In this document: positions 36,818 to 56,626 of the stretch, piece by piece
Position numbering within the stretch: the first letter of the stretch is position 1
Layout: every line of letters starts with the position of its first letter
Sequence record: NC_070958.1
Strand: one strand, 5' to 3'
DNA: 64,000 nt
Made by a program: the position numbers and the translations under genes
The notes under the pieces: model-generated
Told to the model about the DNA's origin: nothing
Database searches by the model: none
Seen by the model: the letters and a program-made list of their open reading frames with translations, nothing else

Positions 36818-37483
36818 GTGATCAATGTAACAAGCGCGTTCTCAATGGGTATCGGTGGTAGCATGTCGAAAGCCGCTGCCGATGTTTATAACCAAACTCT
36901 GACTTCGATATATGACGGGATGTCGAGCCTGGGTGGTTGGTTGGGTGGCGCTGTCCAATCGGTTGTCCAAAGCCATGAAAACTTCATGAACTCTAACATG
37001 TGGGAGTTCAGTAAGCGGATTGGTAAAGACGGTCACTATGTTGGACGTTTCGATGTAGGTTACCTGTCGGAAGTGGGTTATCAACAACAAGCTGTCGGGT
37101 TGATGCGGAACTACATCATGGCTAACCCCAAGATGATGGAACTGTACGAAGCCGATCGCATATCTGGTTATGATGGTGAAATCTCTGATCTCTGTAGTGG
37201 GATCGGTCGTGACAACTATTTCTATAACCGCGCTGTTGATGGCCTGATGCGTATCGAAGATGATGAAGCGGTGCGTACTCACTACGCCACATCTCTCGAC
37301 AAGTATACTCACTTGTCAGCGATGGAACGTGTGGACATCAAACGTACCTGGGCAGCTAGCAATATCCATATTGCTAAGAACCTCTTTGACCCAAGTAGTA
37401 TTTCTGGCGGGAAGATTCTTTCTGTAGAGGAAGTTGAAGCTATCCAGAAACAAATGGAAGAAGAAGCGGGCGACGCCCAGTAA
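36818..37483 (+). CDS. Conserved phiKZ-like hypothetical protein
   Basis: GGAGG upstream of GTG; 221 aa. Confidence 0.8.
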   Translation: MINVTSAFSMGIGGSMSKAAADVYNQTLTSIYDGMSSLGGWLGGAVQSVVQSHENFMNSNMWEFSKRIGKDGHYVGRFDVGYLSEVGYQQQAVGLMRNYIMANPKMMELYEADRISGYDGEISDLCSGIGRDNYFYNRAVDGLMRIEDDEAVRTHYATSLDKYTHLSAMERVDIKRTWAASNIHIAKNLFDPSSISGGKILSVEEVEAIQKQMEEEAGDAQ

Positions 37484-37488
37484 TAGGT

Positions 37489-37518
37489 GGGAGCTAACCG
37501 GTTTCCCGGTTAGCTCTT
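37489..37518 (+). terminator. Stem-loop
   Basis: gggagctaaccgg-tttc-ccggttagctctt. Confidence 0.75.
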
Positions 37519-37552
37519 CCTTTATATAGTTATTTTTTTTTAGGAGTGTTAT

Positions 37553-37885
37553 ATGACCCCCGAAATTATCCATGAAGACAGTGTTGTTACCGCATTCAAA
37601 GTGAATGACCATCTCTACGGCGTTCACCCCAAGAACCTTGAAGTGGGGACTTATCAAGGTATAGTCAAGTTCCAAAAAGGAGACCCGGCAATAGAAGAGA
37701 ATGGTTTGACCTTGGAAGCACTGCTCGCGATTTGTATCAGTCGGCTGGATAGTTGTAACCAAGGTAACTTCAAATGTCTCCATAACGATCTCGCAATCGA
37801 ACATATGAAAGCTGCCAAGGTAGCTCTCGAAGAAAGACAGTCCGATCGCAAGAACCGTTTTGTACTTGCTACCGATAAGGTGTAA
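37553..37885 (+). CDS. tad1: Tad1-like immune-signal sponge protein
   Basis: KFQKG...NG..LL.I...RL....GNF....N..A..H...A...L..R..DR..R.VL.T.K pattern matches the Tad1 family as I recall it. Confidence 0.75.
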   Translation: MTPEIIHEDSVVTAFKVNDHLYGVHPKNLEVGTYQGIVKFQKGDPAIEENGLTLEALLAICISRLDSCNQGNFKCLHNDLAIEHMKAAKVALEERQSDRKNRFVLATDKV

Positions 37886-37886
37886 T

Positions 37887-38372
37887 ATGAAATTTGGTTA
37901 TTCAAAGTTGATGCTGGATCTTGGATCAGCATCCAGAATCCGCAAAGCGGCCATGAAGGTCATCGAAGGAACCGAGAAAGAAAAGGACCAAGCAGTTCTC
38001 GACGTAATCAACATCCCTGCAACCGAACTCCACGCCACACTGATGTATGACAAACGTAATCCGGATATCATTCCGGATACCAACCGTGCATCATATAAGG
38101 CAAAGGTAACCGGTGTTGAACGTCTGGGTACGCCAGGTGGTAACTACTACGCCCTGGTACTGCTTTGCGAGTCAGAAGGGATTACAAAACGTCACGAAGA
38201 ACTTCTCGAACAAGGTTTCAAACATAGCTGGCCTGACCTGAAGATTCACGTTTCACTCAACTATGGTGACCAGGTTACCGTTGCGTACCCTATTATCAAG
38301 GAAGCCTTCGAGAAGGGTTATCTCCCTACCGAAGTGACCTTGGGTGCCGAGTGCTGGAACGAGTGTCGTTAA
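37887..38372 (+). CDS. acb1: Acb1-like 2H phosphoesterase (anti-CBASS nuclease family)
   Basis: Two HxT/S motifs LHATLMY and IHVSLNY; ALVLLCES..I..RH...GFKHSW segment resembles T4 Acb1 (gp57B). Confidence 0.8.
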   Translation: MKFGYSKLMLDLGSASRIRKAAMKVIEGTEKEKDQAVLDVINIPATELHATLMYDKRNPDIIPDTNRASYKAKVTGVERLGTPGGNYYALVLLCESEGITKRHEELLEQGFKHSWPDLKIHVSLNYGDQVTVAYPIIKEAFEKGYLPTEVTLGAECWNECR

Positions 38373-38382
38373 GATGGAAGAA

Positions 38383-38410
38383 GTTTCAGGCATATATTAC
38401 CTAAGTGATA
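38383..38410 (+). promoter_or_regulatory. Phage promoter motif
   Basis: GTTTCA-ggcat-ATATTAC-ctaa-GTGATA; contains TATATTAC. Confidence 0.65.
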
Positions 38411-38444
38411 ACATAACCATGTTTAACAATTCGAGGTAACTACC

Positions 38445-38594
38445 ATGTTTGAAGCAATGTCCAACTCCCAAGCTTTCGGTTTCGCTTTCTTCGGTGCTAT
38501 CGGCGTAATCGCTGTTATCGCTATCGGTACCAATGAATACTTCAAAGCCAAGAAAGCTCTGAAGCGTCCAATGGCTACTCGCAACAAGCGTTGA
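38445..38594 (+). CDS. Small single-pass membrane protein (49 aa), not in ORF track
   Basis: GAGGT upstream; MFEAMSNSQAFGFAFFGAIGVIAVIAIGTNEYFKAKKALKRPMATRNKR; own promoter motif and terminator. Confidence 0.75.
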   Translation: MFEAMSNSQAFGFAFFGAIGVIAVIAIGTNEYFKAKKALKRPMATRNKR

Positions 38595-38599
38595 TATCA

Positions 38600-38622
38600 A
38601 CCCTCTCCCATTGGGAGAGGGT
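38600..38622 (+). terminator. Stem-loop of the ACCCTCTCCC/GGGAGAGGGT family
   Basis: accctctccc-att-gggagagggt. Confidence 0.75.
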
Positions 38623-38660
38623 AGTTTCAATTACATTTATTTTTTTTTGTCGAGGTTCAT

Positions 38661-47392: not shown

Positions 47393-47423
47393 AGCCAGGG
47401 AACCCGTGAGGGCTCCCTGGCTC
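47393..47423. terminator. Stem-loop between convergent genes
   Basis: agccagggaaccc-gtga-gggctccctggct. Confidence 0.75.
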
Positions 47424-47443
47424 TTTATATACTTATTTTTTTT

Positions 47444-47785
47444 TTATTCCCGTTGTACGCGGTTAGTCTGCGTGATCATCAGCAAGTCTTCACGAGTAAT
47501 CATCTTGATTTCAGAGAGATGACTGAAGTCTGCTGTTGGATCGTCGATATCGTTGATGAACCCAATAACCCACATCATGTCTTCGGCGACTCGTTCGGTT
47601 ATTGTTCCTGCACCATACTCCCTAAGGAACTTATAGAAGTTATGACGATAGGCAAACTTCTTACCTATGTCAACAATGGGAACACTACTAGCTCTCGCTT
47701 GTAATATTTCTTTACAAGACCTGACTATTACTTTGAATTCCTCAGTGTAGAAGTAATCATTCCCACTGGCGATACGTAAAGGCAT
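47444..47785 (-). CDS. Conserved small protein, possibly virion/baseplate-related
   Basis: AGGAG upstream; MWVIGFINDIDDP resembles LysM-like tail proteins. Confidence 0.65.
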   Translation of the reverse strand: MPLRIASGNDYFYTEEFKVIVRSCKEILQARASSVPIVDIGKKFAYRHNFYKFLREYGAGTITERVAEDMMWVIGFINDIDDPTADFSHLSEIKMITREDLLMITQTNRVQRE

Positions 47786-56574: not shown

Positions 56575-56608
56575 AATTCACCCTCTCCCACCAGGGAGAG
56601 GGTGAATT
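56575..56608. terminator. Stem-loop of the ACCCTCTCCC/GGGAGAGGGT family
   Basis: aattcaccctctccc-acca-gggagagggtgaatt between convergent genes. Confidence 0.8.
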
Positions 56609-56626
56609 GTTCTTATTTTTTTTTTG

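Follow-up and report, generated by a model that had tools for sequence, protein, structure and literature searches.

We found that two adjacent genes of Aeromonas phage D6, D6_0048 (gene A) and D6_0049 (gene B), encoded members of the Tad1 and Acb1 families, respectively. The two genes probably form a co-transcribed counter-defence pair directed against the diffusible nucleotide messengers that host abortive-infection systems use, with the labour divided between the two proteins; we give this reading a probability of roughly 70%. It draws on the family membership, folds, catalytic motifs, synteny and purifying selection observed at the locus. The window, which is the whole 64-kb stretch of DNA analysed, was 100% identical to D6, a phiKZ-like jumbo phage of 260 kb. 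Both genes were annotated as hypothetical proteins in MN131137.2, and the whole D6 genome contained a single Tad1 copy of the gene A type and a single Acb1 copy of the gene B type. Neither Tad2 nor a gp184-type Tad1 copy was found in the D6 genome, and NCBIfam had a model for neither protein. Additionally, D6_0044 shared 55% identity over 158 residues with the C-terminal end of a metagenome-derived protein that has a Pfam Chimallin match; the assignment of D6_0044 as a chimallin runs through that match and not one of its own, and a direct search of D6_0044 with the Pfam Chimallin model gave no match.

The locus contained the following features.

37489 to 37540, plus strand: upstream terminator-like signal, comprising a GC-rich hairpin of 13 pairs (37489-37518), a spacer and the T-run TTATTTTTTTT (37530-37540).
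37553 to 37885, plus strand: gene A (D6_0048), 110 aa, a small free-standing member of the Tad1 family and putative sponge for nucleotide immune signals.
37887 to 38372, plus strand: gene B (D6_0049), 161 aa, a 2H phosphodiesterase of the Acb1 family whose motifs are H49xT51 and H121xS123.
38384 to 38411, plus strand: 28-nt intergenic motif TTTCAG..TATATTAC..AGTGATAA, just 5' of D6_0050.
38445 to 38594, plus strand: D6_0050, a small membrane ORF of 49 aa with one hydrophobic helix and a basic C-terminus ending in RNKR.
38600 to 38647, plus strand: downstream terminator-like signal, comprising a GC-rich hairpin (38600-38622), a spacer and a T-run (38637-38647), which ends a three-gene unit.

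Gene A ended with a TAA stop codon at 37883-37885 and the ATG of gene B lay at 37887; the coordinates and the 1-nt spacing reported in the first-pass annotation were thus exact. The ribosome-binding site of gene A (AGGAG) was located 8 nt upstream, and that of gene B (AAGGTG) fell within the 3' end of gene A. The same annotation had placed the pair between two terminators inside the core block, which was correct in part: hairpins flanked the pair, but the second lay past a third ORF, giving a three-gene unit, and the pair was within the block but in a variable slot and not at a fixed core position. The upstream signal closed the preceding gene, D6_0047. The module of hairpin, spacer and T-run occurred four times in the window compared with 0.07 expected, and it was present at the equivalent place in the relatives L009, L012, L017, OBP and pEt-SU. 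All relatives had D6_0050 conserved directly 3' of Acb1, even pEt-SU, where Tad1 is missing. The 28-nt motif was near-identical in L009, L012, L017 and L018, although the proteins of these relatives share only 40-60% identity with those of D6, and it is possibly the promoter of D6_0050 itself or an RNA signal. The word TATATTAC, which may resemble the phiKZ early promoter, occurred once in the 64 kb and is therefore not a general promoter word in the window; a literature search for it returned nothing useful, and a sigma-70 promoter scan of the window performed no better than on shuffled sequences. Compared with phages LAh10 and D3, gene B showed 19 synonymous and no non-synonymous codon changes, and gene A showed 12 synonymous and four non-synonymous changes; both genes are real and under purifying selection.

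Gene A belongs to the Tad1 family. This assignment had been made in the first-pass annotation, and it was upheld by profile searches and by comparison of an AF2 model using Foldseek, which recovered the Tad1 family and the Tad1 fold, respectively. All of the Tad1 motifs quoted earlier were present in the protein: IVKFQKG at residues 37-43, GNF....N..A..H at 71-84, R..DR..R.VL.T at 95-107 and the NG...LL.I...RL motif at 50-65, the last with a spacing of five residues instead of the schematic two. A phmmer comparison matched residues 36-108 to CbTad1 with an E-value of 3e-4, and an exhaustive HMMER search (phmmer) revealed 621 relatives at E<=1e-3; a word-based protein search returned gene A itself alone, and a single-protein scan of viral contigs gave no matches. 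A profile built from 70 relatives matched CbTad1 (E 9.4e-29) and CmTad1 (1.8e-26) at full length as well as phiKZ gp184 (5.6e-23), with no match outside these three proteins. Gene A itself scored 8.5e-33 against this profile, a circular value, as gene A is the first row of the underlying alignment. The AF2 model (pLDDT 94.1) contained an N-terminal antiparallel sheet with four strands, followed by two long helices at residues 54-68 and 76-101, and it matched Tad1 chains with a Foldseek probability of 1.00 and TMq values of 0.75-0.83. There were 20 matches at E<=1e-3, apparently all to Tad1 chains, which accounted for 13 of 13 among the matches listed; the next match had an E-value of 0.55. The Pfam result counts on the other side: no match of gene A to PF24729 (Acb2/Tad1 hairpin domain) was found at E<=1 and the gathering score was not reached, and 10 of the 70 relatives matched this model at E<=0.01.

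Comparison with the characterised proteins CbTad1, from a Clostridium botulinum prophage (PDB 7UAV/7UAW/8KBE-8KBH), and CmTad1 (8KBB-8KBD) showed a common fold of a sheet and a two-helix hairpin (TM 0.75-0.83) together with shared FQxG, NG, RL, GxF and N..A motifs and two pocket arginines. Some differences were present. In particular, gene A, which is carried by a lytic jumbo phage and not by a prophage, is 110 residues long compared with about 124 in characterised Tad1, its N-terminal sheet has no GPGGA-type loop, and Ala91 takes the place of the Trp at the interface of the CbTad1 hexamer, a trimer of dimers. In CbTad1, the pocket for gcADPR and cyclic dinucleotides consists of F82, N92, R109 and R113, the trinucleotide site consists of R90 and T97, and Tad1 homologues differ in their binding spectra (bioRxiv 10.1101/2023.11.15.567273). 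The alignment equated N92, R109 and R113 with N78, R95 and R99 of gene A, a trio retained in 63 of the 70 relatives and in all seven Acb1-linked homologues (gene A and six relatives). Phe82 was replaced by Cys68, leaving three of the four pocket residues, and the equivalent position across the seven Acb1-linked homologues was C, R, L, V, Q, Q and F. The family-wide invariants Y22, F40, Q41, G43, N50, G51, E55 and R64 were conserved. Both trinucleotide residues were replaced (R90 by Leu76 and T97 by Glu83), and none of the seven Acb1-linked homologues had Arg or Thr at these positions. This loss is not specifically tied to Acb1 linkage, because it is common across the whole sequence neighbourhood: the site was lost in 61 of the 70 relatives, and both residues were retained in nine. 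Given Cys68, the missing loop, Ala91 and the lack of a Pfam match, the ligand range and oligomer of gene A may differ from those of characterised Tad1.

Gene B belongs to the Acb1 family, an assignment likewise first made in that annotation and now borne out by Pfam, a PDB profile search and structure comparison, in which the Acb1 model and Acb1 structures came top. The protein scored 55.3 bits against PF23474 (Acb1; gathering cut-off 27, E 8e-15), which was confirmed on the genome, and this model alone passed its curated cut-off; Pfam 2_5_RNA_ligase2 matched weakly (E 0.006). The family profile of gene B retrieved only Acb1 chains from the PDB at E<=0.01. The AF2 model (pLDDT 89.9) had Acb1 entries as its top five Foldseek matches, and the VIA Z-scores were 14.1 to the Acb1-type phosphodiesterase of Burkholderia phage BCSR5 (PDB 9Q2G/9Q2Y; rmsd 2.9 between 145 aligned residues) and 12.6 to Acb1 of Erwinia phage FBB1 (136 aligned), compared with at most 10.4 for other 2H enzymes (CPDase and LigT, 9.8-10.4). 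The two HxT/S motifs noted earlier were confirmed as H49-A-T51 and H121-V-S123; H49 and T51 were invariant and H121 was present in at least 90% of 13 homologues. These motifs aligned with those of FBB1 Acb1, for which a catalytic role of the HxT/HxS tetrad has been described (PMC9117128).

The Acb1 structures of FBB1 and phage T4 (PDB 7T26/7T27) share with gene B a compact 2H fold, an HxT/HxT-type tetrad and a similar size. Gene B differs from them in being only about 20% identical, in its second motif being HxS and in an extra conserved H113-S114 before that motif. The conserved Y5, W115, E155 and W157 of gene B are candidate base-stacking, adenine-reading or lid residues, although sequence alignments gave no confident equivalence to Acb1 Y12, W74, F107, E141 and W147, and the lid and base-stacking residues of the FBB1 and T4 enzymes were not confidently alignable. 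The BCSR5 enzyme, the best structural match, is also about 20% identical and has in common with gene B the motif G-x-x-H-[SG]-x-P, which precedes the second catalytic His. We found no publication on the substrates of this enzyme, and the match therefore adds no functional information.

Two alternative readings concern the molecules on which these proteins act. Gene A could be a Tad1 fold with a shifted ligand, binding another ADP-ribose-derived or cyclic-nucleotide signal, or dinucleotides only, and not gcADPR; the anti-Thoeris label would then be mistaken, though the sponge mechanism would hold. The variable Cys68 position, the shortened N-terminal loop, the change of both trinucleotide-site residues and the varying spectra of Tad1 homologues point in this direction, as does a close relative, P0012, whose partner is not Acb1 but a NADAR domain, which processes ADP-ribose. 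We nevertheless consider a shifted ligand unlikely, though well worth keeping in view, as Asn78, Arg95, Arg99 and the family invariants were conserved and the model superposed on ligand-bound CbTad1 with a TM of about 0.8. It is improbable that gene B is a general RNA-metabolism 2H enzyme, that is, a 2',3'-cyclic phosphodiesterase or a LigT-like RNA end-healing enzyme, and not an immune-signal nuclease. The 2H fold is shared with such enzymes, the 2_5_RNA_ligase2 match exists, and databases annotate homologues as RNA ligase or phosphodiesterase, with PHROG 755 labelled RNA ligase; against this, only Acb1 passed the curated Pfam cut-off and only Acb1 chains were matched in the PDB, Acb1 structures scored 2-4 Z units above every other 2H enzyme, and gene B is persistently linked to a signal sponge.

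This linkage was evident from the distribution of the pair. Besides D6, 17 sequenced phages carried the two genes side by side, giving a total of 18 from Aeromonas, Serratia, Pseudomonas, Klebsiella and Shewanella; the genes were also adjacent in the metagenomic contigs L009-L012, L016, L017 and L018, with a gap of 0-36 nt between Tad1 and Acb1 in relatives. In several host genera the pair was still together at identities as low as about 36-40%, and the pairwise identities of the two genes co-varied (r 0.83, 21 pairs). The slot lies directly after the homologue of phiKZ gp59 and varies among phages: it was empty in EL and PhiPA3, held Acb1 without Tad1 in pEt-SU, and held genes unrelated to the pair in phiKZ, RisingSun, Aphrodite1, phiKp_32, RAY and Proteus phage 10. 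In Kc263, a decayed Tad1-derived part that has lost the pocket residues was fused in frame to Acb1; Tad1 is thus dispensable in this slot. We considered phiKZ gp60/gp61 as diverged homologues of the pair on account of the same slot and near-equal sizes, yet HMM, BLAST and Pfam comparisons revealed no similarity and they were rejected. Acb1 was found alone in many other phages and Tad1 alone in Bacillus, Agrobacterium and Shewanella phages. When viral and metagenome contigs were scanned with the Acb1 alignment, only five loci came up, none with a Tad1-like neighbour.

The meaning of this adjacency can be read in other ways. The conserved neighbourhood with its minimal gap and the in-frame fusion in Kc263 would suit a physical complex in which the sponge hands its bound signal to the nuclease. 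We regard such a complex as very improbable, however: tight spacing is usual in phage genomes, either gene occurs without the other, known Tad1 and Acb1 proteins each work alone, and the Tad1 part of Kc263 lacks its pocket residues. It is possible, at clearly less than even odds, that the adjacency carries no functional meaning, the slot being an accessory hotspot for unrelated counter-defence genes and the pair simply being inherited together. The varied occupancy of the slot is consistent with a hotspot, and co-varying identities are expected of any two linked genes in related phages; on the other hand, the pair has been kept over large divergence in several host genera. A hotspot is also compatible with both genes being functional and differs from a counter-defence pair with divided labour only on cooperation.

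For that divided pair, we consider the bind-and-destroy reading put forward in the first-pass annotation to be reasonable. As to ligands and oligomeric state, we infer that gene A most likely forms at least dimers, in which Asn78, Arg95 and Arg99, all conserved, would make up an interface pocket that sequesters gcADPR-type Thoeris signals and/or cyclic dinucleotides. Gene B is predicted to be a metal-independent Acb1-type 2H phosphodiesterase that uses the HxT/HxS tetrad and most likely opens 3'-5' bonds, acting on those CBASS cyclic di- and trinucleotides that contain adenosine and on cA3 of type III CRISPR. The enzyme would then remove trinucleotides and 3'3' dinucleotides, and the sponge would take the signals that the enzyme cannot cut; this division is the likeliest because gene A and its six Acb1-linked relatives lack both trinucleotide-binding residues. 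Phage T4 likewise combines an enzyme, Acb1 (57B), with a sponge, Acb2 (Vs.4), where Acb2 cannot bind trinucleotides and Acb1 cuts them, which is the logic proposed for D6. The T4 sponge is Acb2 and that of D6 is Tad1, and the sources consulted describe no linked pair of the two genes in T4.

The nucleus-forming jumbo phage phiKZ also encodes a Tad1 domain, in gp184 (PDB 8Y6V chain I), of which residues 102-227 matched the gene A profile. In this 230-residue protein, the N-terminal part is wedged in the capsid and the Tad1 part is released and injected (PMC12676376). Unlike gp184, gene A is a bare domain at another genome location and is linked to Acb1. According to a 2026 review, the phiKZ Tad1 is the sole anti-defence protein so far described in jumbo phages (PMC13282480). 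The GenBank record of AerS_266 already labels a homologous pair as anti-Thoeris and anti-CBASS; no paper describing such a pair was found, the papers on AerS_266, Vera/Igor and BMBAH1 are silent on these genes, and the core-genome paper mentions no enzyme like gene B. The D6 proteins are new members of known families, and their conserved arrangement is modestly new.

The phage nucleus is no barrier to diffusible second messengers. Signal-based defences do act on nucleus-forming phages (review PMC13282480; NucC in PMC12676376). Because the nucleus passes these messengers and such defences work on these phages, the pair is a testable candidate answer to signal-based abortive infection, and this is where a benefit to a nucleus-forming phage would lie. 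A second, stand-alone Tad1 form and Acb1 make up a conserved linked pair in many chimalliviruses. The natural Tad1 variants without a trinucleotide site provide material for structure-function work, and in Aeromonas phage therapy in aquaculture, the pair bears on host range against CBASS and Thoeris strains. More speculatively, and with the odds against it, a chimallivirus clade may carry, at an accessory hotspot of the core genome, an inherited anti-signalling module of two parts, in which the sponge gave up trinucleotides since the enzyme covers them and the two together blanket the messengers of Thoeris, CBASS and type III CRISPR. Other counter-defence genes may be found in the variable core-block slot; if the module exists as described, the slot elsewhere in chimalliviruses would hold undiscovered ones, with phiKZ gp60/gp61, RisingSun gp31/32 and phiKp_32 0180/0190 as candidates.

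Aeromonas phage D6 (MN131137.2; genus Ludhianavirus, 259,831 bp, host A. hydrophila) showed 100% identity across the 2.3 kb around the gene pair, and the window numbering is that of its record, in which both genes, D6_0048 (gene A) and D6_0049 (gene B), are annotated as 'hypothetical protein'. D6 is a phiKZ-like phage, and D9, D3 and LAh10 were 98-99% identical to it at the locus. The flanks contained a split RNA polymerase beta' gene (D6_0046) on one side and an SbcD-like gene (D6_0053) on the other. The Pfam Chimallin model did not match D6_0044 directly; a metagenomic protein that does match it shares, at its C-terminus, 55% identity with D6_0044 over 158 residues. Just 5' of the locus, several relatives carry an HNH endonuclease gene within or after the beta' gene (metagenomic contigs L011, 1073-2035, and L017, 554-1516; phiKZ gp56, L022, 9202-10206), and none was found at the corresponding place in D6. 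The layout of the locus was as follows.

36818-37483: D6_0047, homologue of phiKZ gp59 (E 2e-15)
37489-37518: upstream hairpin, 13 bp, GC-rich
37553-37885: gene A (ORF A), 110 aa
37887-38372: gene B (ORF B), 161 aa counted from the ATG
38384-38411: 28-nt motif, TTTCAG..TATATTAC..AGTGATAA, between the gene B stop and D6_0050
38445-38594: D6_0050, 49 aa, with a single hydrophobic helix and RNKR at the end of its basic tail
38600-38622: next downstream GC-rich hairpin, beyond D6_0050
37489-37540, 38600-38647, 47395-47445, 56580-56625, plus strand: recurrent module of a GC-rich hairpin, a 4-15 nt spacer and TTATTTTTTTT

The exact coordinates bear out the spacing reported in the first-pass annotation, as a single base separates the gene A stop from the gene B start. 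Gene A is preceded by a Shine-Dalgarno-like AGGAG and gene B by AAGGTG, which lies within the end of gene A. The pair had also been placed between two terminators; hairpins were indeed present on both sides, but D6_0050 precedes the downstream one, and the hairpin-bounded unit therefore consists of three genes. On the 3' side of each flanking hairpin, a short spacer leads to TTATTTTTTTT. The window contained four copies of this hairpin-spacer-T-run module, where 0.07 would be expected by chance, all on the plus strand at gene ends, and the positions of the two copies flanking the unit were kept in related phages; this phage group likely uses the module as its form of terminator, or as a terminator-promoter junction. 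D6_0050 was found directly 3' of Acb1 in all relatives examined, including OBP, Kc263 and pEt-SU, which has no Tad1. The 28-nt motif was nearly invariant in contigs L009, L012, L017 and L018, although the proteins there are only 40-60% identical, and TATATTAC occurs once in the 64-kb window; the motif is probably D6_0050's own promoter or an RNA signal. Compared with LAh10 and D3, the codon differences were 19 synonymous and 0 non-synonymous in gene B and 12 synonymous and 4 non-synonymous in gene A. Both genes are under purifying selection.

Gene A belongs to the Tad1 family, as had been proposed from sequence motifs, all of which were found, together with the HxT/S motifs quoted for gene B. 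It had no match in Pfam or NCBIfam and matched PHROG 2428, where no function is assigned, with an E-value of 5e-17; phmmer against PDB sequences returned Tad1 chains (E 3e-4, residues 36-108). Since a word-based protein search returned only gene A itself, an exhaustive search was used, which revealed 621 representatives at E ≤ 1e-3, mostly of 100-140 aa. The family profile, built from 70 of these, matched CbTad1 (9.4e-29) and CmTad1 (1.8e-26) over their full lengths and the C-terminal half of phiKZ gp184 (5.6e-23), and nothing else in the PDB at E ≤ 0.01. The AlphaFold model (pLDDT 94.1, pTM 0.81) contained four strands and two long helices. Foldseek gave 20 matches at E ≤ 0.001, and all 13 of those listed were Tad1 chains (TMq 0.75-0.83), with the following match only at E 0.55. 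The whole D6 genome contained one Tad1-family gene, and neither a gp184-like long form nor Tad2 was found in it.

To compare gene A with characterised Tad1, the residue roles of CbTad1 described by Li et al. (bioRxiv 10.1101/2023.11.15.567273) were mapped through two concordant alignments. In the gcADPR/dinucleotide pocket (N92, R109, R113 and F82), the first three residues are retained as N78, R95 and R99, whereas F82 is altered to Cys68. The cyclic-trinucleotide pocket residues R90 and T97 are altered to Leu76 and Glu83, and W105 of the hexamer interface to Ala91. Unlike CbTad1, gene A and its nearest relatives do not contain a GPGGA-type loop in the N-terminal sheet. Among the 70 relatives, 63 kept the pocket Asn/Arg/Arg, 50 had an aromatic residue at position 68 and only 9 kept both trinucleotide residues; in the aligned Acb1-linked homologues, these proportions were 7/7 for Asn/Arg/Arg and 0/7 for the trinucleotide residues. 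Because only 6% of the Tad1 set of Li et al. carried substitutions in the trinucleotide site (bioRxiv 10.1101/2023.11.15.567273), the branch of gene A is atypical.

Gene B belongs to the Acb1 family of enzymes, in agreement with its earlier assignment. It reached 55.3 bits with the Pfam Acb1 model (PF23474, cut-off 27), and the generic 2',5' RNA ligase model fell under its own cut-off. The PDB entries matched by a profile of 13 homologues were all Acb1 (FBB1 4.8e-13, BCSR5 5.4e-11). The structural model (pLDDT 89.9) was closest to BCSR5 Acb1 (Z 14.1, rmsd 2.9, 145 aligned residues), followed by FBB1 Acb1 (Z 12.6), with other 2H enzymes at Z 10.4 or lower. H49-x-T51 and H121-x-S123 are conserved and align to the catalytic HxT motifs, whose tetrad performs acid-base catalysis in Acb1, an enzyme that cuts di- and trinucleotides 3' of adenosine (Hobbs et al., PMC9117128). 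D6 contained one Acb1-type gene.

Adjacency of the pair in sequenced phages, read from the coordinates of two tblastn runs, was observed in the Ludhianaviruses D6, D9, D3 and LAh10; Aeromonas phages AerS_266, CF8, AhC3_1, ZPAH34, PS1, PS2, AVP1, ACP1 and pAEv1810; Serratia phages Yubaba and Sureiya; Pseudomonas phage OBP; Klebsiella phage N1M2; and Shewanella phage SXP01. Five look-ups of the nearest metagenomic relatives of gene A also placed Acb1 immediately downstream. The order in metagenomic relatives and known phages was chimallin, RNA polymerase beta', gp59 homologue, Tad1-like gene, Acb1, small ORF, 137-aa gene, 266-aa gene and SbcD. The pairwise identities of genes A and B co-varied (r 0.83), as expected of linked genes anyway.

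Homologues of phiKZ gp59 were present in 160 phage records, and the slot directly after them is variable among chimalliviruses (loci examined: L022, 12670-13456, with phiKZ gp60 and gp61; L024, L025, L026, L027 and L030). It was empty in EL and PhiPA3 and held Acb1 alone in pEt-SU, and in phiKZ (gp60/gp61), RisingSun, Aphrodite1, phiKp_32, RAY and Proteus phage 10 it contained genes without detectable similarity to either family. These small genes are possible further counter-defence candidates; phiKZ gp60 and gp61, at 111 and 154 aa, are near the sizes of the D6 pair, with no similarity to it detectable. In Kosakonia phage Kc263 (L029, MZ348422.1, 3425-4210), the slot holds a single open frame, annotated as one 245-aa 'RNA 2',3'-cyclic phosphodiesterase', in which the Acb1 domain is complete and the N-terminal part fused to it is a decayed Tad1-like one; this part retains its strands and the NGVTEE..LLDRF helix, and FQxG and the Asn/Arg/Arg pocket residues are gone. 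In addition, P0012, a close metagenomic relative of gene A (103 aa), has a 159-aa NADAR-domain protein 6 nt downstream in place of Acb1 (L013, 3001-3798; Logan SRR30862805), a different sponge-plus-enzyme pairing with an ADP-ribose-processing domain.

The observation of an adjacent Tad1-like and Acb1-like pair was thus confirmed, and its interpretation was supported, the bind-and-destroy reading being a reasonable one. We established the two family memberships, the folds, the catalytic residues and part of the pocket residues, the linkage and the selection; the functions we infer. The gene A sponge would sequester gcADPR-type signals, dinucleotides or both in a pocket at the dimer interface, and the gene B enzyme would linearise cyclic di- and trinucleotides containing adenosine. 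Together they may blunt Thoeris, CBASS and cA3-dependent type III CRISPR, defences of a type that uses diffusible messengers and is effective against nucleus-forming phages (PMC13282480; PMC12676376). A sponge without the trinucleotide site fits a division of labour with Acb1, but this fit is only suggestive, because most of the sequence neighbourhood of gene A is without this site anyway. The same logic has been noted in T4, where Acb2 does not bind trinucleotides and Acb1 cuts them. Tad1 can also bind 3'2'-cGAMP, a signal not cleavable by Acb1.

Tad1 was already known from a jumbo phage as phiKZ gp184, a capsid-packaged protein that is injected (PMC13282480; PMC12676376), and annotation pipelines had already reported Acb1 matches in jumbo phages. 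In the GenBank record of AerS_266, the homologous pair carries the labels 'Anti-Thoeris, immune evasion protein' and 'Anti-CBASS, nuclease'; the AerS_266 phage paper does not mention it, and our literature search found no paper describing the linkage of the two genes, how it is conserved or the absence of the trinucleotide site. Genes A and B are new members of known families, and the new point, a modest one, is that the Tad1-Acb1 linkage is conserved at a variable slot within the core block of chimalliviruses.
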